DNA of 64,000 bases from the NCBI GenBank assembly GCA_002269645.1, contig NIVC01000911.1:186001-250000 (forward strand). Reading direction: 5' to 3'. A program made the translations under genes and the position numbers. Below the pieces are notes generated by a model. The model ran no database searches. It saw only the letters and a list, made by a program, of their open reading frames with translations, and had not been told where the DNA came from. The stretch comes from Macrostomum lignano. Taxonomy: Eukaryota. Positions 3,278-60,870 of this stretch are shown one piece after another (within the stretch, counting starts at the first letter, position 1; each line of letters starts with the position of its first letter).

Positions 3278-3743
3278 ATGTTCCTGTCTAACCAGGCTGC
3301 CTCAGACTCGCCCGCTCAGGCCAGCGGCGGCAGTTGCTGCGAAAGATGCGCCGAAGTTGAACAGATGCTGGAGGAGGCGCGCGAAGAGCTGGAGGAGTTT
3401 CAGGTGAGTGAATTTAGTAACTTTCTACTATCAGGGATTATTTGATTTTTTGATTTTTTATTTGTTTGATTGTTTTTAAATCCCAGACCAGCTCCCGGGA
3501 GCTGGAAGCGGAACTGGAGACGCAACTGCAAGCGTCTGAGCGTCGCGAGCAGGAGGCCCGCAGCGCGCTGGAGCGGTCGCACAACGAATTGCAACGGTGT
3601 CGGGAGCGATCGGAACGGCAGATTGCCAGCTTAAATGGCCAACTAAATAGCTTGCAAGATGAGCTCAATCAGGTGTGTTAGTTAGATAGTTAGATAGTTA
3701 GTTAGTCAGTCAGTCAGTTAGTTAGTGAGTTAGTTAGTCAGTC

Positions 3744-3774
<31 letters not shown>

Positions 3775-3779
3775 CAGTC

Positions 3780-3814
<35 letters not shown>

Positions 3815-3867
3815 CAGTTAGTTATTTAGTCAGTTAGTTAGTCAGTTAGTTAGTTAGTCAGTCAGTC

Positions 3868-3906
<39 letters not shown>

Positions 3907-3988
3907 CAGTTAGTCAGTTAGTCAGTCAGTTAGTTAGTTGGTTAGTTAGTTAGTTAGTTAGTTAGTTAGTCAGTTAGTCAGTCAGTTG

Positions 3989-4022
<34 letters not shown>

Positions 4023-4063
4023 CAGTCAGTTAGTTAGTTAGTTAGTTGGTCAGTCAGTTAGTC

Positions 4064-4098
<35 letters not shown>

Positions 4099-4443
4099 CA
4101 GTCAGTTAGTTAGTCAGGTAGTTAGGTAGTTAGTCAGTCAGTTAGTTAGTTAGTTAGTTGGTCAGTCAGTTAGTCAGTTAGTCAGTCAGTTAGTTAGTTA
4201 GTTAGTTAGTCAGTTAGTTAGTTAGTAAGTTAGTCAGTTAGTTAGTTAGTTGGTTGGTCAGTCAGTTAGTTAGTTAGTTAGTTAGTCAGTTAGTTAGTTA
4301 GTCAGTTAGTTAGTTAGTAAGTTAGTCAGTTAGTTAGTTGGTCAGTCAGTTAGTTAGTCAGTTAGTTAGTTAGTTAGTCAGTTAGTCAGTCAGTTAGTTA
4401 GTCAGTTAGTTAGTTAGTTGGTTGGTCAGTCAGTTAGTTAGTC

Positions 4444-4479
<36 letters not shown>

Positions 4480-4971
4480 GGTCAGTCAGTTAGTCAGTTA
4501 GTCAGTCAGTTAGTTAGTTAGTTAGTTAGTTAGTCAGTTAGTTAGTTAGTAAGTTAGTCAGTTAGTTAGTTAGTTGGTTGGTCAGTCAGTTAGTTAGTCA
4601 GTTAGTTAGTTAGTTAGTCAGTTAGTCAGTCAGTTAGTTAGTCAGTTAGTTAGTTAGTTGGTTGGTCAGTCAGTTAGTTAGTCAGTTAGTTAGTTAGTTA
4701 GTTAGTTAGTCAGTTAGTTAGTTAGTCAGTTAGTTAGTTAGTAAGTTAGTCAGTTAGTTAGTTGGTCAGTCAGTTAGTTAGTCAGTTAGTTAGTTAGTTA
4801 GTCAGTTAGTCAGTCAGTTAGTTAGTCAGTTAGTTAGTTAGTTGGTTGGTCAGTTAGTCAGTCAGTTAGTTAGTTAGTTAGTTAGTTAGTCAGTTAGTTA
4901 GTTAGTAAGTTAGTCAGTTAGTTAGTTGGTCAGTCAGTTAGTTAGTCAGTTAGTCAGTCAGTTAGTTAGTC

Positions 4972-5018
<47 letters not shown>

Positions 5019-5641
5019 CAGTCAGTTAGTCAGTCAGTTAGTTAGTTAGTTAGTCAGTTAGTCAGTCAGTTAGTTAGTTAGTTAGTCAGTTAGTCAGTTA
5101 GTCAGTCAGTTAGTTAGTTAGTCAGTTAGTTAGTCAGTCAGTTAGTTAGTTAGTCAGTTAGTAAGTTAGTCAGTTAGTTAGTTGGTCAGTCAGTTAGTTA
5201 GTCAGTTAGTCAGTCAGTTAGTTAGTCAGTTAGTTAGTTAGTTAGTTGGTCAGTCAGTCAGTCAGTTAGTTAGTCAGTTAGTCCCTCAGGTAGTAAATTA
5301 GGTCAGGCAGCCGGTCAGTACTTTTAACGCTACTCTGCCCCCATCAACCAGGTGCGGCAGGAGCGCGACAGACTCAGAGGCTGCGTGAGGGAGCTGGAGA
5401 CGCTCAATGACGATCTGGAACGGGCCAAGCGGCACACTCTGGCTTCGTTAGAAGATTTCGAACAAAAGCTCAACGCCGCTATCGAGCGGAACGCTTTCTT
5501 GGAATCTGAGCTGGACGAGAAGGCGGCTCTGGTGGAGATGGTGCAGCGATTGAAGGACGAGTCTAGAGACCTGCGCGAGGAGGTGACCGTGCAGGTGCAG
5601 ACTCGGCAGCGGATCTCCTCTACCGCCAATCAGGTGCGCGC

Positions 5642-5734
<93 letters not shown>

Positions 5735-9837: not shown

Positions 9838-16307
<6,470 letters not shown>

Positions 16308-25869: not shown

Positions 25870-28800
25870 TCACGGCTCCTCGGCAGCAGCCGAGAATCTG
25901 GTGAGAGAATTCGCCATCCTGCGTCTTGGCTGCCCGTTCTCAGCGACCAGCTTCAGGCCGGGTACTGAGAACACCGAATCAGCTGAAGGCAGTGGGCGGG
26001 GGTTTGGTCTGCGTGTGCTTTTTGAAACTGCCGATTGTTGCCTAAACACCAGCTCGATAAATTCACCCATTAACTAATAGCGTCATTCATTAAGCTATAG
26101 ACTCACTCATCGAATTACTCATAAACTCACTCATCGAATTACTCATAAACTCACTCATGAAGTCACTCGTAAACTCACTCATGAATCACTCATAAACTCA
26201 CTCATGAATCACTCATAAACTCACTCATGAAGTCACTCGTAAACTCACTCATGAATCATTCATAAAATCACTCATGAACTCACTCATAAAATCACTCATG
26301 AAATCACTCATTAAATCACTCATGAAGTCACTCATAAAATCACTCATGAACTCACTCATTAAATCACTCATGAACTCACTCATAAAATCACTCATGAACT
26401 CACTCATAAAATCACTCATGAACACTCACTCATAAAAACACTCATGAACTCACTCATAAACTCACTCATGAATCACTCAAAAACTCACTCATGAAATCAG
26501 TCATAAACTCACGCATGAATCACTCAAAAACTCACTCATGAAATCAGTCATAAACTCACGCATGAATCACTCATAAACTCACTCATGAAATCAGTCATAA
26601 ACTCACTCATGAATCACTCATAAACTCACTCATCGAATTACTCATAAACTCACTCATGAATCACTCATAAACTCACTCATCGAATTACTCATAAACTCAC
26701 TCATGAATCACTCATAAACTCACTCATCGAATTACTCATGAACTCACTCATGAAGTCACTCATAAAATCACTCATGAATCACTCATAGAGTCACTCATGA
26801 GATCATTTGGAACTCTACTACTGAACTCAGTTACAACTATCTCACTCTCGCACACCCCATTCCCTCACTGGGCTGCAGCCGGTGCAGGCAGTCCGGCAGG
26901 CAGTCAAAGTACGGATGCCGCAGCGCCTCAGCGGTGGTGCAGCGCAGCTCCGGCCGGAGCTGCAGGCAGGCGCGGGCCAGCGAGTCGGCGTGGGCGATGG
27001 ACAGCAGGCGTGGCACCAGGCGGTGCAGGCGGCCGCCAGTGGACCCGATCGGTGCCACCCGACGCTGAGGCGACAGCAGCAGCTGCTGCTTGAGTTCTTG
27101 CCGTTGCTGCTGCTGCTGCTGCTGCTGCTCCTCAGTTGGCTGAGCCGGTTTCAGTCGAGCCCATCCGGGCAGTGACGTCACTTCCGGCCAGACTTTCTCT
27201 GTGGGCTGGCCGGTCACCTGCGTGACGCGATTTGGCTTGGCTTAGCATAGTGTGAGTGGGTGAGTCGCTTTTGCAGCTGTTAGTGGTCAAGTAGATAAAG
27301 TAGGTCGATAGATGAGTTAATATATAGTCAAGTATAAAGTAAGTAGATAAGGTAGCTACAGTAGATAAGGTAGCTACAGTAGATAAGGTAGCTAGAGTGG
27401 ATAAGGCAGCTTCAGTAGATAGGGTAGCTACGGTAGATAGGGTAGCTTCAGTACCTTGAAAATTTTCTTCAGCTGATCCTCCGCAGTCCTGGCTCCCGGA
27501 AACAGCGGCGACCCGCTCAGCATCTCGGCGTGGATGCAGCCGACTGCCCACAGATCCAGGGAGCCGGCATAGGTGGTGCTGCCTAGCAACACCTCCGGCG
27601 GCCGGTACCACAGGGTGACAATCTCGGAGCTGTAGGATCTGCTGGGAACTGTTTGAGCTCGGGCCAGACCGAAATCGGCCAATTTCAATTCGCCAATAGC
27701 TGAGATTAACAAATTTTGCGGCTTTAAATCGCGGTGCAAAATGCGACGTTTATGACAGAAATCCAGACCGCGGAGCAGTTGGAATAGGAACAGCTGAAAG
27801 GGGTGTACACAAACTGTGCTCAACTTGATTAGCTGAGACTATACTCAAACTCGATTACCTGACAATAGTAACACTCGATTACTCTAACTGTGATCAAAGC
27901 TGATTTACCAGCATGTTAGCTTAAACATCTACCTATAATTTATCTCACCTTCGCATTGTGAGACCTTAATCCTGTCGGATGCTGTTCCATGTACTTGGAC
28001 AAATCCATGGGCTAAAAAATATTAGGATAAGCGCAGTAGATACTTGTTTATTAAGCTTTTATAATTAAACACGGATAGCTATAAGTCAATTCTCACCACA
28101 AATTCGAACACAAAAGTTAAATTTGTACTGGTATGAACAATGTCGTGTAGGGTGACAATGTTGGCGTGCTTGAGGCCTTTCAGCAAAGAGGCTGCAATGA
28201 GATTAAAATACTTGAATAATACACCTGGATAATACTACACCCAGGTGTGCTAGAATGTTACTCCCGGATATGTTTTAAAACTACACCTGGATGTACTATA
28301 TGAATACGTACCACTCGAGAAGTTACCCAGAACATCACACCAGAGTCGGGCTTTTCTGAAGACAGTTCTTAAAGGACACGGCTAAATGTTCTTTTAGCTC
28401 GTATTTAATTAACCCTCCAGATTTTGTTTTACATTGTCAGAGGTTCTTAGCTACTCAGCCAACCAGTAATTACTGCTTTAAACACTACAAACTTGAAGCA
28501 ACGGAGCTACACAAATGCCATAAAGTCACCTTCTCGTATGGCAGTAAACGGGGTACCCTCATCGTGCTGCAGCCTGATGTCTTTGAGAGCCACGACCGAA
28601 TTCGTGACGCTGAAATTACAGTAGGAAGTTAATCAAATTGCTTATCTCATCGTTATACGATTAAATGAATCGTAATTAAATGATTAGTAATTAGGGCGTA
28701 AACTTAACCACCGGAATGAAGCCCGAAGTCCAAAACACCTCTGCCAAATCAGGGAGCAGAGTATGACTATTGCGCCACGACCCAGGTGGTTCAATTATTC

Positions 28801-35445: not shown

Positions 35446-35955
35446 TCAGTGCACCGTAGTCCCACCGCTACTCTTCCTGTTTGGACCTCCATCGCCTCCC
35501 GTGGACAAATTTGGCGGGAAACGTCGAAAATGTTGATTAGAGTTGAACAGGCTCGGGTCGCGGCTCTCTCCTAGTCGTTGTTGGGCTGCCAAAGCCTGTA
35601 GGAAACTGCCAAGGCGAGGCTCGGGCCTGCGGAACTTCAGCACAGTCAGGCACAGCAGGAGATGGGCGACTCCGGCCGCGGCAGCGCCAAGTCCGACGTA
35701 GCACCAGACGCCGAGAGTTCGACTTGATTTTCCCTCTCTGCCGTAGGTGCCAGGCTTTAGCATGACCAAGCTGTCATTGTCGATGTCTCTCAGCAGCAGG
35801 GCTAGAGAGCTGAGACCGCCAAGAATGCAGCCGCAAATTGTCAGAGTGACCGGCGGCATGAGGTGAATATAGCGAAGACAGCGCACCTCGTCACATTCGG
35901 CCACCAGTTTCTGCTCCTTGTCTTCACTTCGATCGTATTCCAATGTTATTGTCAT
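35446..35955 (-). CDS. Intronless small membrane protein, 169 aa, two predicted TM helices, family unknown
   Basis: Non-repetitive GC-rich ORF starting MTITLEY. Hydrophobic segments are PVTLTICGCILGGLSSLALLL and LGVWCYVGLGAAAAGVAHLLLCLTVL, followed by KFRR. Confidence 0.65.
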   Translation of the reverse strand: MTITLEYDRSEDKEQKLVAECDEVRCLRYIHLMPPVTLTICGCILGGLSSLALLLRDIDNDSLVMLKPGTYGREGKSSRTLGVWCYVGLGAAAAGVAHLLLCLTVLKFRRPEPRLGSFLQALAAQQRLGESRDPSLFNSNQHFRRFPPNLSTGGDGGPNRKSSGGTTVH

Positions 35956-36212
35956 GCTTGTGTAGAATAAAATTGCTTTTCTGACTGTTTTTGACGGCAA
36001 TATGAACAATTGGTAGTTATTATATCGAAATTGAATTGGGATTGGTTGTAAATTAGCTATTGAACAATCTATCAATTTTTAAGCTGAAGCCACGGACTGC
36101 TCAATAACGGGAAGCTACAAAAGTTGGAGGCCTTCTAATAATATGTTAGTCCTCGAAAAGCATCACCAGGATAGGTTTTTACCATAGACAAAACTCACTG
36201 ACGACTTCTCTC

Positions 36213-36552: not shown

Positions 36553-37055
36553 CTTCTCTCGCACTTGCAGACCTTTAATTTTTTCTCCTCTTAAATCGCG
36601 TTTTGATGCTCAGAATTCAGTCTTAACATGTAGCAATCGAAAATGCGGTACGCATGCAGTTGTTGCGGCTGCTATTCAATACATTATAATCCGCTTTAAA
36701 TATTCATACAGAAGTTCAAGAACGAAAGCAGGAATGCTACTTAGGTCAAAATTAGCTCGATAAAATAAATGTGTTATATTTAAAATGACATTTTCACGTT
36801 TTATTGTACTGCATTTCACGGAAGAATTGACAGTTGCAGATAATGGCACCTATACGGTGCAGTGCAGGCAAGCGTACAACAGCAATTGCTATGCAATTAT
36901 TAGCTTGGCTGCCAATGTCATACAGTGTGTACTTTTACTTAGAGCTGAAGTTGTCAAAAATGAGGTCATACCGGGTGTATGGAGAGTAAAAAAGTGTCAT
37001 GTACATCTGGAATAGCTAAAGTATGTCGACCATTTAGGTATATCGTTACTTTTGC

Positions 37056-37681
37056 TCACGCAGCAATCTGCAGCTCGCAGGCGTAGTCTTGTTGAGCAAT
37101 TTCGTACCTGTAAATCATTGGTTCGCCTTGCCCAGGACCGCAGTAGGTGGTCGCCTCGTCCGACACTCGCTTCACCTGCCTGAGCACAAGAACCTGACGG
37201 CTGCGCTGTACACAGCGTGTGTTGCTGGCGCTGATAAACTTTGTCCTACCGTCCGGGCAGAGGCACCGGGTCTGCGCAACCAGAGCCGGCTCTCGGGTCA
37301 TTTCCAAGTCGTCCAACAGCTGCACAGTGGGACAGATGGCGTCACTTTGAACGCCGCGGACAGACTGCAGGCTCTCAGGCGCGTCGCTGCATAGTTTCTG
37401 AGCAGCTGGCCTGATTTCGTTAACAAGCCGCTGGATTTCCGTCTGAGCTTTGGCAGCTTGGCTGGCATTGTAGCAGAGCACCACGCTGTCGCTGCCGTCA
37501 GGAAGTGGAAAGGCGCTGCTGATCTCGCAGGGAAGCAAAACCAGCAGCGGTAGGATGAGCCAGCATAGCGGTACCGCTGAAATTCACAGTTAGATCACAG
37601 TTAGATCACAGTTAGATAACTCAACTTTATATATGAACTCTGTGTACTGCATTTTCTTTACTTACCTTTATAAGTGTTCAT
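37056..37681 (-). CDS. Secreted IL-17-like cystine-knot protein; exons 37666-37681 and 37056-37576 (178 aa)
   Basis: ATG AAC ACT TAT AAA G|gtaagt..tttcag|CG gives MNTYKAVPLCWLILPLLVLLPCEISSA (signal peptide). The C-terminal half, AICPTVQLLDDLEMTREPALVAQTRCLC..CVQRSRQVLVLR..YRYEIAQQDYAC, follows the IL-17 pattern. A TATA box lies upstream and AATAAA downstream. The gene model is firm; the family call is pattern-based. Confidence 0.72.
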
Positions 37682-37742
37682 AGTTGTGCACAGGCGTACT
37701 GACGAATAGGTGCCTGATTTAATTTGAAAGACTGCTGCTTGA

Positions 37743-37748
37743 TTTATA
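37743..37748 (-). promoter_or_regulatory. TATA box (TATAAA) about 62 bp upstream of the IL-17-like ATG
   Basis: TTTATA on the plus strand at 37743-37748; the position fits a short 5' UTR. Confidence 0.5.
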
Positions 37749-40056: not shown

Positions 40057-40877
<821 letters not shown>

Positions 40878-43082: not shown

Positions 43083-45343
43083 ATGGCAGTCAGGAGTTCG
43101 CCGTCCCAGCAGCAGCAGCAGCAGCGCGGTGGCAGCGCGTCATTTTCGATGCGCAACATCCTTGCAGAGACTGCAGCCACTTCTACCTCGGATTCAAATG
43201 AATTTCAAAGCCGTCCGATGCACAGTCAGTTGCAGGGACACCTGTATCTGAGGCCAGGTAACTCCGAGATTGGGTGTTGAAACCTGAGGATCGAAAGTCG
43301 ACAGTACATGTATGGCCTTAAGACTGGAATCATTTGACCGTAGGATCTTTGAACAGTAGGATCTTTGGACAGTAGGATCTTTGGACAGTAGGATCTTTGA
43401 ACAGTAGGATCTTTGTACTGTGAGATCTTTGGACTGTGGGATCTTTGGACTGTGGGATCTTTGTACTGTGGGATCTTTGAAGTGTGGGATCTTTGGACTC
43501 TGGATCTTTGTACTGTGGGATCTTTGGAGTGTTGATCTTTGTACTGTGGGATCTTTGGACTGTGGGATCTTTAGACTGTGGGATCTTTGGACTGTGGGAT
43601 TTTGGACTGTAGGATTTTGGACAGTGGGATCTTTGGACTGTGGGATCTTTGGACTGTGGGATCTTTGGACTATCTGATTTGCAAGCTTCAAAAACTTGCA
43701 ACCATTTACAACTTCAATCTTCAACAGCTCCAGACGAAGCCTCTTTTGTCTATCAGCAGCACCAGCAGCCTCAAACGGCAGTCATGCAGCAGCAGCACCA
43801 GTATGAGCGGTATGCTTACCAGCATCAGCTGGAACAGCCACAGTACTCAGGCCAGCATCATCAGCATCAGCTACTCCGCCATCAGTCTTTGCAAGACTAC
43901 ACACCCACTTGGAACTCATTTCGACCTCGAATCCAGCAGTATCATCAGCCGTCGACATCTCGACAGCATCCCAGTCTGAATTCCAGAAGCTGCCGTCGGC
44001 AGATCAATTTGTCTTCAGATTCTCCTGACACCTCCGTCGGTGCCGCAGCTGTCTTGATCGCCGCTTCCGATGAAGCCGAAGATGAAGAACTGGGCGAGGA
44101 CCAGGACGCGGCAGTGGACATTGACTCCGCCGCCGGTGTCGGCGACAGCGCTGAGGCGAGCGGATCGAGGAAACGGAAGCGGCGGGTGCTGTTCACGAAG
44201 CAACAGACCTACGAGCTGGAGCGACGATTCCGTCAGCAGAGGTACCTGTCGGCACCCGAGAGGGAGAGCCTGGCCAGGTGCATCAACTTGTCGGCGACTC
44301 AGGTGAGCCCTCCTACTGACTGTTGGCTGTGAATGTTCCACGAGATGTCCTCATTCACCAATATGTTCTGAGACATGTCCCCATTCACCAATATGTTCTG
44401 AGACATGTCCCCATTCACCAATCTTTTCTGAGACATGTCCTCATTAACCAATATGTTCTGAGACATGTCCTCATTCACCAATCTTTTCTGAGACATGTCC
44501 TCATTAACCAATATGTTCTGAGACATGTCCCCATTCACCAATCTTTTCTGAGACATGTCCTCATTAACCAATATGTTCTGAGACATGTCCCCATTCACCA
44601 ATCTTTTCTGAGACATGTCCTCATTCACCAATATGTTCTGAGACATGTCCTCATTCACCAATATGTTCTGAGACATGTCCTCATTCACCAATATGTTCTG
44701 AGACATGTCCTCATTCACCAATATGTTCTGAGACATGTCCCCATTCACCAATATGTTCTGAGACATGTCCTCATTCACCAATATGTTCTGAGACATGTCC
44801 TCATTCACCAATATGTTCTGAGAGATTTCCTCATTTACCAATCTGTTCTGAGAGATGTCATCATTCACCGAGCTGTTCAGAGAGACTGTGAGATCCCGCC
44901 CGCTCGCCCGCCAGGTGAAGATCTGGTTCCAGAATCATCGCTACAAGATGAAGCGCGCCCAAGCTGAGAAAGGCCAGCAGCCGGAGCCGCTAGCGCCAGT
45001 CATGAAACGAGCGGCAGCCTCTGCTGCGGTGGCCGGCATGATGGCTTCTGACATGAAGCAGCAGCAGCAGCAGCAGCAGCCGCAGCATCAGTACCAGCAC
45101 TATCATCTGCCACTACCAGCTGCTGTTGTATCGACACCTGTAGCGACTCCCAGCATCCATCATCAGCCTCATCAGTATCAGCAAAATTTTCAACAATTTT
45201 ATCACCAGCCACAGCAGCCACAGCAGCAGCAGCAGCAGCAGCAGTCGCATCTTGCTAGTTATGCTACGGGATTTAGCGATAGTCCTTACGGAGCTTTTGT
45301 CCAGCCTCATCATATTCATCATCATCATATTCCGCGATTATAA
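43083..45343 (+). CDS. NKX2-2: NK2.2/vnd-type homeobox transcription factor; exons 43083-43257, 43728-44302, 44915-45343 (about 392 aa)
   Basis: TN/eh1 motif FSMRNIL. Homeodomain [43 protein letters not shown]|[15 protein letters not shown] carries the NK2 Tyr54 and the NK2.2-type [14 protein letters not shown]. Intron phases are consistent. Confidence 0.9.
43340..43672. repeat. 16-bp minisatellite (CTGTGGGATCTTTGGA) in NK2 intron 1
   Basis: Direct. Confidence 0.92.
44340..44890. repeat. 30-bp minisatellite (AATATGTTCTGAGACATGTCCTCATTCACC) in the intron inside the homeobox
   Basis: Direct. Confidence 0.95.
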
Positions 45344-46530: not shown

Positions 46531-47522
46531 AGAACTAATTAACATTCCTGAGTAGGTCAGGTTCTTGAATTTTTTAATTTAATTTTTACGGCTGATAGTT
46601 AGCAACACAGTCTTTCAAACAAATCTGCCAGCTAGAAAAATGCAAAAACAAGCAAAGCTTATGTTATTCGAAAATGGAAATTCTTGGAAACATAATTATT
46701 TCAAAAACGCATTTAAGCTATTTATTTTCTGTGACAAGCAGAGAGACAAGCCGATCGGAGAAGGCAACAAAGATATCAACTGTTCTGAAAAATTGCAAAC
46801 CAATTTCGCCAAAATCTTGAAGTAAGAGCTAAGGTCCAAGCCATGCTACAATTAGTATAAAAAATCATGCAAAATAATTTAGTTACAACAAAGAGAGTGG
46901 ATGAACACAAAAATGAAAGTCAATCCTTTATATACAATCTAAACGTGAGCAAGTTTTCCAATAGTGGCTGAGGTTTTGATGAGGCGGCACATGCTCGCAA
47001 GGAAAGATCGCACAGGAAAAAAGCAAAATTAAAAGCAGAAAAATAGCGGCTCCAAGACAGACAACTTCGGTACTTTTTTAAGCAACTCATTTTAAAAGCT
47101 ACAATTGCACTCTAAAAAATAAACTCTGGATTAATCTTAAGGCCCTAAATATATTTTTTTCGGTACTATAATCATTAATATATTTCTACCAAAGCAGTTT
47201 CCCAATCCCAAAAGTTAAAGATATTACGACATTAAAGACGCAAAAATATTTCCATTTCTGTCCTAAAATCTAAACGGAAAGACCAAATTAAACTTACTTA
47301 AACAGTAGGAGCTATGAGGCAGACAGCACATCAAAGAAAAGAAAACAACTATTCATATTTTCTGATTTTCCCAGAAAAAATAAAACAAAATTTATATGGG
47401 ATAATTTTAACAAAAATAAATCTTGATCTAATAAATATTGCGATCGCAAATATACGAAGTAAATCATGCAACCATTATTTGCATAGTTAAACAAAATCAA
47501 TTTTAAATGTAAAACTGAATTT

Positions 47523-57037
<9,515 letters not shown>

Positions 57038-59494: not shown

Positions 59495-60870
59495 GAGAGT
59501 GTCTCCCGATTCCAGAGTGTCTCTCCCGATTCCAAAGTGTCTCTCTCGATTTCTGAGTGTCTCTCCCGATTCGATTCCTGAGTGTCTCTCCCGATTCCAG
59601 AGTGTCTCTCCCGATGCCAGAGTATCTCTCCCGATTCCAGAGTATCTCTCCCGATTCCAGAGTATCTCTCCCGATTCCAGAGTATCTCTCCCGATTCCAG
59701 AGTATCTCTCCCGATTCCAGAGTGTCTCTCCCGATTCCAGAGTATCTCTCCCGATGCCAGAGTATCTCTCCCGATTCCAGAGTATCTCTCCCGATTCCAG
59801 AGTATCTCTCCCGATGCCAGAGTATCTCTCCCGATTCCAGAGTGTCTCTCCCGATTCCAGAGTGTCTCTCCCGATTCCAGAGTATCTCTCCCGATTCCAG
59901 AGTGTCTCTCCCGATTCCAGAGTGTCTCTCCCGATTCCAGAGTGTCTCTCACGATTCCAGAGTATCTCTCCCGATGCCAGAGTGTCTCTCCCGATTCCAG
60001 AGTGTCTCTCACGATTCCAGAGTGTCTCTCCCGATGCCAGAGTGTCTCTCCCGATTCCAGAGTGTCCCTCCCGATTCCAGAGTGTCTCTCCCGATGCCAG
60101 AGTATCTCTCCCGATTCCAGAGTGTCTCTCCCGATTCCAGAGTGTCTCTCCCGATTCCAGAGTGTCCCTCCCGATTCCAGAGTGTCTCTCCCGATGCCAG
60201 AGTGTCTCTCACGATTCCAAAGTGTCCCTTCCGATTCCAGAGTGTCCCTCCCGATTCCAGAGTGTCTCTCCCGATGCCAGAGTGTCTCTCCCGATGCCAG
60301 AGTGTCTCTCCCGATGCCAGAGTATCTCTCCCGATTCCAGAGTGTCTCTCCCGATTCCAGAGTGTCCCTCCCGATTCCAGAGTGTCTCTCCCGATGCCAG
60401 AGTGTCTCTCCCGATGCCAGAGTGTCTCTCCCGATTCCAGAGTATCTCTGGCCCGGTTCCAGAGTGTCCCTCCCGATTCCAGAGTGTCCCTCCCGATTCC
60501 AGAGTGTCTCTCCCGATGCCAGAGTGTCTCTCCCGATGCCAGAGTGTCTCTCCCGATGCCAGAGTGTCTCTCCCGATGCCAGAGTATCTCTCCCGATTCC
60601 AGAGTGTCTCTCCCGATTCCAGAGTATCTCTCCCGATGCCAGAGTGTCTCTCCCGATTCCAGAGTATCTCTCCCGATGCCAGAGTGTCTATCCCGATTCC
60701 AGAGTATCTCTCCCGATGCCAGAGTGTCTCTACCGATGCCAGAGTGTCTCTCCCGATGCCAGAGTATCTCTCCCGATTCCAGAGTGTCTGTCCCGATTCC
60801 AAAGTGTCCCTTCCGATTCCAGAGTGTCTCTCCCGATTCCAAAGTGTCCCTTCCGATTCCAGAGTGTCTC
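59495..60870. repeat. 20-bp minisatellite (GAGTGTCTCTCCCGATTCCA)
   Basis: Direct. Confidence 0.97.

Follow-up and report, generated by a model that had tools for sequence, protein, structure and literature searches.

The 64,000-nucleotide stretch of Macrostomum lignano contig NIVC01000911.1 analysed here (positions 186,001 to 250,000 of the forward strand; hereafter the window) carries on its minus strand, between 37748 and 37056, a short reading frame that a first-pass annotation, made from the DNA letters, described as a compact gene for a secreted cystine-knot cytokine resembling interleukin-17 (IL-17). We wondered if this frame belongs to a real gene and, if so, to which family of ligands its product should be assigned. 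Our analysis makes it very probable that it is a real two-exon host gene for a secreted IL-17-superfamily ligand of the invertebrate T1C knot class.

The decisive profile was a hidden Markov model (HMM) built from 28 invertebrate IL-17s taken from the S1 Dataset of PMC4517768, which covers IL-17s of nematodes, an annelid, molluscs, Daphnia and a sea urchin; crustacean female sex hormones (CFSHs), vertebrate sequences and the candidate itself were left out. Against this model the candidate scores 25.8 bits, with a domain score of 25.1 bits and a domain i-Evalue of 8.6e-10 over residues 65-143. The full score was reached by none of 60,000 composition-matched shuffles (nor by any of 5,000 in a smaller set), the highest of which stopped at 16.3 bits, and the Gumbel tail is about 1e-6. 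The reversed candidate sequence scores -0.8 bits. Further, when 2,005 six-frame open reading frames (ORFs) from the window and five other loci were scanned blind, three genuine CFSH genes came first, followed by the candidate (E 1.3e-6) and then noise (0.81), the candidate being the only match that was not a control. Controls scored against the same model gave 60.5 bits for IL-25, 55.5 for IL-17F, 53.7 for IL-17A and 27-40 for CFSHs.

Other comparisons point in the same direction at lower scores. The best pairwise phmmer matches are Caenorhabditis elegans F25D1.3 (19.3 bits), sea urchin SPU_030204 (18.6) and an oyster IL-17 (16.3). With an HMM combining CFSHs and the PDB-verified IL-17A, IL-17F and IL-25 the candidate scores 17.2 bits, again reached by 0 of 60,000 shuffles; a three-sequence vertebrate HMM gives 6.1 bits. 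When residues 65-178 alone were compared with Pfam, PF06083 (IL17) came out on top of 24,736 families (14.3 bits, E 0.057), short of the 24 bits that Pfam requires; the match covers residues 31-81 of the fragment, equivalent to residues 95-145 of the protein. The PF06083 search suggested by the first-pass annotation thus ranked IL17 first, but below threshold, for the domain and returned nothing for the whole protein. On the same Pfam model, IL-17s of C. elegans and Daphnia score 55 and 50 bits, and two genuine CFSHs (database entries P0121 and P0124) reach 21.4 and 19.0, both below 24. The assignment of the candidate as a putative divergent IL-17-family ligand, which the first-pass annotation had put forward, is statistically supported by the invertebrate IL-17 profiles. 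The register it had proposed (ICP, R.P, RCLC, VLVLR, Y.Y, yAC) agrees with that obtained from MAFFT and HMMER alignment to invertebrate IL-17s.

The arrangement of cysteines specifies this relationship. The 178-amino-acid product has ten cysteines, two in the signal region and eight in the mature part (C40, C68, C87, C110, C112, C127, C151 and C172). Published IL-17 knots fall into several types: T1A has disulfides 1/4, 2/5 and 3/6, T1B lacks 2/5, T1C lacks 3/6, the vertebrate type T2 lacks 1/4, and T3 lacks cysteines 5 and 6 (PMC11087794). In the alignment to canonical IL-17s, C87 of the ICP motif takes the place of cysteine 1 and C127 that of cysteine 4; chordates have in these columns the serine of SPW and the serine of NSVP, respectively. 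C110 and C112 occupy the C.C column, which holds cysteine 2 and an extra cysteine also present in IL-25, IL-17B-E-like and CFSH sequences. C172 (YAC) takes the place of cysteine 5. Nothing corresponds to cysteines 3 and 6, a joint absence also seen in C. elegans F25D1.3 and T22H6.1 and in Lottia gigantea 169526. The candidate would thus retain knot disulfides 1/4 (C87-C127) and 2/5 (C110 or C112 to C172) and lack 3/6; since pairs 1/4 and 2/5 are kept and 3/6 is missing, it is placed in the T1C class.

Several peculiarities noted earlier are explained by this alignment. The first-pass annotation spoke of a rewired knot; the 3/6 pair is indeed gone, but the pattern is no novelty, since it equals the published T1C type (PMC11087794). 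The absence of cysteines 3 and 6 defines this subtype and does not speak against IL-17 membership. The remark that only one cysteine is left of the terminal CxC was correct, C172 being cysteine 5 and cysteine 6 being absent; in IL-17A the two cysteines of CxxxxC pair in order with the two of CxC (PMC4692990). The cysteine of TYCGP, taken for an extra one, turned out otherwise: C151, preceded by a 9-residue insertion, falls in the column of the conserved loop cysteine ("RRtgC") of invertebrate IL-17s, which in IL-17A is the cysteine of HCP. A provisional mapping of C151 as terminal knot cysteine was overturned by the same alignment. C68 lies near the conserved upstream "tCP" cysteine. In IL-17A and IL-17F the chains are linked to each other through their N-terminal and loop cysteines (PMC4869123), and C68 and C151, standing at the corresponding positions, might likewise bond between chains. 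It was also rightly noticed that tryptophan is replaced; in C87-P-T, threonine stands for the tryptophan of CPW. The CPW/SPW-type motif before strand 1 is therefore present as CPT, a form shared with CFSHs and one oyster IL-17 (Daphnia has CPS), and invertebrates as a rule have CPW with a third residue that varies (PMC8353272). The cysteine of ICP corresponds to ancestral knot cysteine 1, for which chordates have substituted the serine of SPW.

Among known ligands, the T1C-class IL-17s F25D1.3, T22H6.1 and Lottia 169526 share with the candidate the order of signal peptide, variable N-terminus and, at the C-terminal end, IL-17 domain, in which the motifs CP., R.P...A..C.C, the cysteine-4 position, VLR, the loop cysteine and the single terminal cysteine are in register. 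On the contrary, overall similarity is very low and no match would survive a database-wide search; F25D1.3 scores 55 bits on Pfam IL17, the candidate 14. The candidate further differs by CPT in place of the usual CPW, by the insertion before the loop cysteine, by a strand 2-3 loop longer by 4 residues and by an additional N-terminal cysteine (C40) with a sequon. With vertebrate IL-17A, IL-17F and IL-25 (structures 5n7w, 3jvf and 7uwj) it shares R.P...EA.C, the VLVLR(R) strand, the following loop cysteine and terminal xxC, and knot disulfide 2/5 is common to both; its RCLCP is identical in IL-25. In contrast, vertebrate T2 proteins lack disulfide 1/4 (serine in SPW and NSVP) and have 3/6, the reverse of the candidate.

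The deduced protein has the layout of a secreted ligand. Its sole hydrophobic segment is N-terminal (Kyte-Doolittle values up to 2.9), sites 26/27 and 27/28 both obey the -3/-1 rule, and the splice puts MNTYK, the charged n-region, immediately ahead of the segment. The mature protein comprises about 152 amino acids (16.7 kDa, isoelectric point 5.2), with eight cysteines and one N-glycosylation sequon (N42-A-S). In size and layout it agrees with the family, whose members are secreted, about 125-220 amino acids long and carry a C-terminal domain; the values for the candidate, 178 amino acids and a domain at residues 65-178, depend on the proposed splice.

Is the gene itself real? The long frame contains no in-frame ATG before M98 and therefore needs an upstream start. 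Within 324 nt upstream there is exactly one in-phase ATG...GTRAGT model, and its ATG, at 37681, is the first one 3' of the TATA box, with A at -3. If the intron is retained, the ATG frame ends after seven codons; joined, the two exons give a 537-nt coding sequence in frame, translated to 178 amino acids (MNTYKAVPLCWLILPLLVLLPCEISSAFPLPDGSDSVVLCYNASQ...YACELQIAA). The junction 37666/37576 is deduced from the genomic sequence. The 3' half of the intron is made up of three tandem CTAACTGTGAT copies, each with a branch-point-like CTAAC, just 5' of the acceptor. Exon 2 forms a sharp GC island coextensive with the ORF (58% GC, with 36-37% in both flanks). Its GC contents at codon positions 1/2/3 are 0.63/0.46/0.67, similar to those of host exons in the window (NDE1 0.67/0.37/0.74; cyclin-dependent kinase, CDK, 0.56/0.42/0.64; NK2 exons share the bias). 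Only 0.2% of ORF shuffles stay open. Upstream sequence is AT-rich (23-42% GC) and has no further coding-like island before 38100. Taken together, the GC island, the host-like codon bias, the rarity of open shuffles and the required upstream start argue for a real gene.

The TATA box, 16-nt micro-exon, signal peptide and eight mature cysteines listed in the first-pass annotation were all found on the minus strand (Table 1). Its statement that the gene is hidden from the ORF track holds for ATG-based calling; it does not hold for the mechanical ORF list, where exon 2 appears as a 160-amino-acid frame with TTG start. The gene thus escapes ATG-based calling only. In annotations of invertebrate IL-17s the exon for the signal peptide is known to be overlooked at times, some "signal-peptide-less" members being suspected artefacts, and two exons are the commonest structure of mussel IL-17 genes (PMC8353272).

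A number of observations weigh against this assignment. The local HMM alignment ends at residue 143, and the C-terminal strand (YRYE...AC) was positioned by MAFFT only. No Pfam family matched the whole protein at E<=10, a word-indexed search of 5.8 billion proteins found no relative, and exhaustive phmmer against 1.84 billion representative proteins returned none at E<=0.001. BLASTP gave no alignment to human IL-17A at E<=100, the IL-17A sequence having been confirmed against PDB 5n7w beforehand. The tryptophan of CPW is missing, as described above. In structure prediction, AlphaFold2 reached a mean predicted local distance difference test score (pLDDT) of 41 with the single sequence and 49 with a 13-row CFSH alignment; the N-terminal helix was the only confident part, and because the beta-rich half was of low confidence in both runs, the models do not establish the predicted four-strand cystine-knot fold. 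Finally, the splice junction and expression are predictions from sequence, which also counts for the rival reading of a wrong gene model or a dead gene (see below).

Other routine searches were likewise empty. The PDB sequence search gave noise only (a phage head protein), tblastn detected no paralogues within the window, exact-match look-up of the TTG-start ORF product retrieved no entry, and a motif search of the 2021 IL-17 dataset found nothing, nor did Rfam. Synteny was uninformative: neither the Daphnia Nkx2.2 locus nor an ENA Nkx2.2 contig contains anything similar to the candidate, and among decapod CFSH loci no neighbours are shared within 10 kb. The window's own Nkx2.2 gene is itself absent from the protein database, its best match being a Daphnia fragment with 55% identity; the failure to find a homologue of the candidate is therefore weakened as an argument. 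With all this considered, we regard it as highly likely that the locus holds a genuine IL-17-superfamily ligand gene.

The rival that survives best is a CFSH-type neurohormone for sexual differentiation, not a cytokine, which we consider quite improbable. Arthropod IL-17-family ligands include CFSH and PTTH (PMC11087794, PMC10604874), and CFSHs bind IL-17 receptors (PMC11087794). CFSHs of types 1 and 2, which are secreted IL-17-family ligands of arthropods, resemble the candidate in size, with 8-10 cysteines and a helical N-terminal part; they share with it the motifs CPT/CPS, P..V.EA.C.C and RC, and many likewise fall below the Pfam IL17 threshold. Eight mature cysteines and one sequon beside the N-terminal cysteine are found as in type-1 CFSH (PMC10604874, PMC9662296). 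The window's Nkx2.2 is matched best and most broadly by arthropod sequences, with Daphnia leading and crab and hemipterans next.

Our CFSH set consisted of eight precursors from the supplement of PMC4888303 and twelve database proteins (P0121-P0132). An HMM of these 20 sequences gives the candidate 9.2 bits, a score reached by 2 of 5,000 composition-matched shuffles and far from the 25.8 bits obtained with general invertebrate IL-17s; the register was always residues 85-136. The best pairwise CFSH score is 10.2 bits against 19.3 for the nematode IL-17 F25D1.3, and hhalign against CFSH alignments was weak (E 0.02-0.08). Cysteines 3 and 6 are retained in each of the 20 CFSHs, which hold all six knot cysteines in T1A-like fashion; the candidate lacks both, matches six of eight conserved CFSH cysteine columns (CFSH Cys5 and Cys8 are missing) and has different cysteine spacing. 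Type-1 CFSH has a KR-delimited precursor-related peptide, whereas the mature part of the candidate directly follows the signal peptide and no KR site precedes it; the only dibasic site, K141-R142, lies within the domain. Decapod CFSH genes have one coding exon (PMC4888303), the candidate two. We therefore demoted CFSH identity, since the fit to invertebrate IL-17s at large is better and the features that define CFSHs are absent. The comparison also disclosed that 10 of the 12 database CFSH-type proteins have no precomputed Pfam domain and that most are named "uncharacterized protein". Because of this, and because P0121 and P0124 score just under 24 bits, we conclude that the Pfam IL17 model systematically under-calls arthropod members.

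A very improbable possibility is that the IL-17-like ORF is real and the gene model wrong or the gene dead, i.e. that another first exon is used or that the locus is an unexpressed relic. An in-phase ATG...GTRAGT also arises in 2.3% of shuffled upstream sequences, and searches for an orthologue by which conservation could be gauged gave none. Against this, the frame is intact with every family cysteine expected of the T1C class, its codon bias matches that of host exons that look expressed, no other ATG lies between TATA box and start codon, donor and acceptor fit the consensus, and the AT-rich upstream region offers no alternative coding-like island. Least of all, the product could be another cystine-knot ligand merely resembling IL-17, such as the Trunk/PTTH/noggin-like protein named as an alternative in the first-pass annotation: Trunk, like PTTH, is a relative of IL-17 (PMC11087794) and Bombyx PTTH (an unverified sequence) scores 20.9 bits on the invertebrate IL-17 HMM, where the candidate has 25.8, but candidate and Bombyx PTTH (the same unverified sequence) give -1.9 bits in phmmer, neither Noggin nor any other knot family of Pfam matches the whole protein at E<=10, IL17 is the top Pfam family for residues 65-178, and the IL-17 motifs CP., R.P, A..C.C, VLR, Y.YE and AC are in register, so that this alternative is not favoured and appears extremely improbable.

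Table 1. Features of the IL-17-like gene and of its surroundings (positions in the window; residues numbered in the 178-amino-acid product)
Feature	Position	Strand	Description
TATA box TATATAAA	37743-37750	-	read directly and by script; 62-69 nt 5' of start codon; putative promoter role
Exon 1, coding part ATGAACACTTATAAAG	37666-37681	-	16 nt; MNTYK and first base of Ala6; start codon and charged n-region
Intron	37577-37665	-	phase 1, 89 nt; GTAAGT...TTTCAG; donor AAAG/GTAAGT equals consensus
Tandem CTAACTGTGAT copies	37577-37625	-	3' half of intron
Exon 2, coding part	37056-37576	-	521 nt; residues 6-178; TGA stop at 37058-37056
Signal peptide, exon 2 part AVPLCWLILPLLVLLPCEISS	37515-37576	-	residues 6-26; predicted cleavage after S26 or A27
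Mature N-terminal region	37401-37514	-	residues 27-64; C40, sequon N42-A-S, predicted alpha-helix (pLDDT 70-84)
IL-17 domain	37059-37400	-	residues 65-178; C68, C87-P-T, R100-E-P, C110-L-C112, C127, V134-LVLR, C151, Y161-R-Y-E, C172
AATAAA polyadenylation signal	36800-36805	-	script pattern match; about 250 nt 3' of stop; putative use
GC island with ORF	35446-35960	-	53-67% GC, flanks 25-36%; ATG-initiated, about 170 amino acids (MTITLEYDRSEDKEQKLVAECDEV...)
NDE1/NUDE exon	5352-5660	+	Pfam NUDE_C, 7.9e-20; runs into (CTGT)n microsatellite
DYRK-like frame	12205-12510	-	assigned by eye; no Pfam match
CDK-type protein-kinase exon	27428-27823	-	Pkinase, 5.9e-35
Nkx2.2-class homeobox gene	43640-45343	+	homeodomain split after ...LSATQV (about 44307), resumes at about 44912
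Minisatellite in Nkx2.2 intron	44345-44883		30-nt unit; most of the intron
ORF beside tandem array	47312-47842	-	176 amino acids; adjoins array of 151-nt units; no Pfam match
Tandem arrays (examples)	1-1486, 3677-5282, 10039-12146, 14655-15872, 40061-40877, 55842-56890, 59502-60870		

The surroundings of the IL-17-like gene are rich in repeats. High-scoring tandem arrays make up about 21.5 kb, i.e. about a third of the window, and none of them overlaps the gene. They comprise tetranucleotide microsatellites, among them a 1.6-kb (GTTA)n array and (AGAC)n/(GTCT)n repeats in several places, together with numerous minisatellites whose units measure 10-84 nt. The Nkx2.2-class gene is arranged head-to-head with the IL-17-like gene at a distance of about 6 kb; the homeodomain of the related gene on the ENA contig is unbroken, in contrast to the split one in the window. 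Directly 3' of the IL-17-like gene and on the same strand lies the second GC island, whose ORF contains two hydrophobic segments, has no Pfam match and may represent another unannotated orphan gene. The ORF at 47312-47842 matches CFSH-containing profiles weakly (E about 0.04) and the invertebrate IL-17 profile not at all; this match is probably noise.

How might the gene work? Transcription would start about 30 nt 3' of the TATA box, and the first AUG would open the 16-nt coding micro-exon. Removal of the 89-nt phase-1 intron would join MNTYK to the hydrophobic core and so complete the signal peptide. Cleavage near residue 26/27 would leave a helical N-terminal segment with one sequon, followed by the C-terminal IL-17 domain; glycosylation at N42, formation of the two knot disulfides (C87-C127; C110 or C112 to C172) and dimerisation are expected. 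By analogy, the protein probably acts as a dimer, possibly disulfide-linked, on a receptor of IL-17R type (FN3 and SEFIR domains). Family members serve in gut and mucosal immunity (sea urchin, molluscs) and also as neurohormones or neuromodulators (CFSH, PTTH, C. elegans ILC-17.1) (PMC5457136, PMC11087794). The role of the candidate may be immune, as the first-pass annotation proposed beside wound and regeneration signalling, or neuroendocrine. A lineage-restricted ligand with a non-immune neuroendocrine or developmental role, like CFSH and PTTH, and with a diverged or non-IL-17R receptor, could be proposed because there is no relative among 1.84 billion proteins and a T1C knot is combined with a helical, sequon-bearing N-terminus; we consider this unlikely.

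The IL-17-like gene of the window is a very divergent new sequence, but both its family and its structural subtype are known and it is no new kind of molecule. The literature already documents the IL-17 repertoires of invertebrates, their two-exon genes, a CPW motif whose third residue varies and the overlooking of exons for signal peptides (PMC8353272), and the finding neither opens a new mechanism nor overturns known facts. It provides a worked example of how IL-17 genes evade annotation, with a start on a 16-nt exon, a sub-threshold Pfam score and no relatives in BLAST or phmmer searches. In an arthropod, such a gene would also bear on the number of IL-17-type ligands present beside CFSH and PTTH. 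As a very divergent T1C sequence, the candidate can help to make IL-17 profiles more sensitive and to follow how knot disulfides were repeatedly lost in the family.

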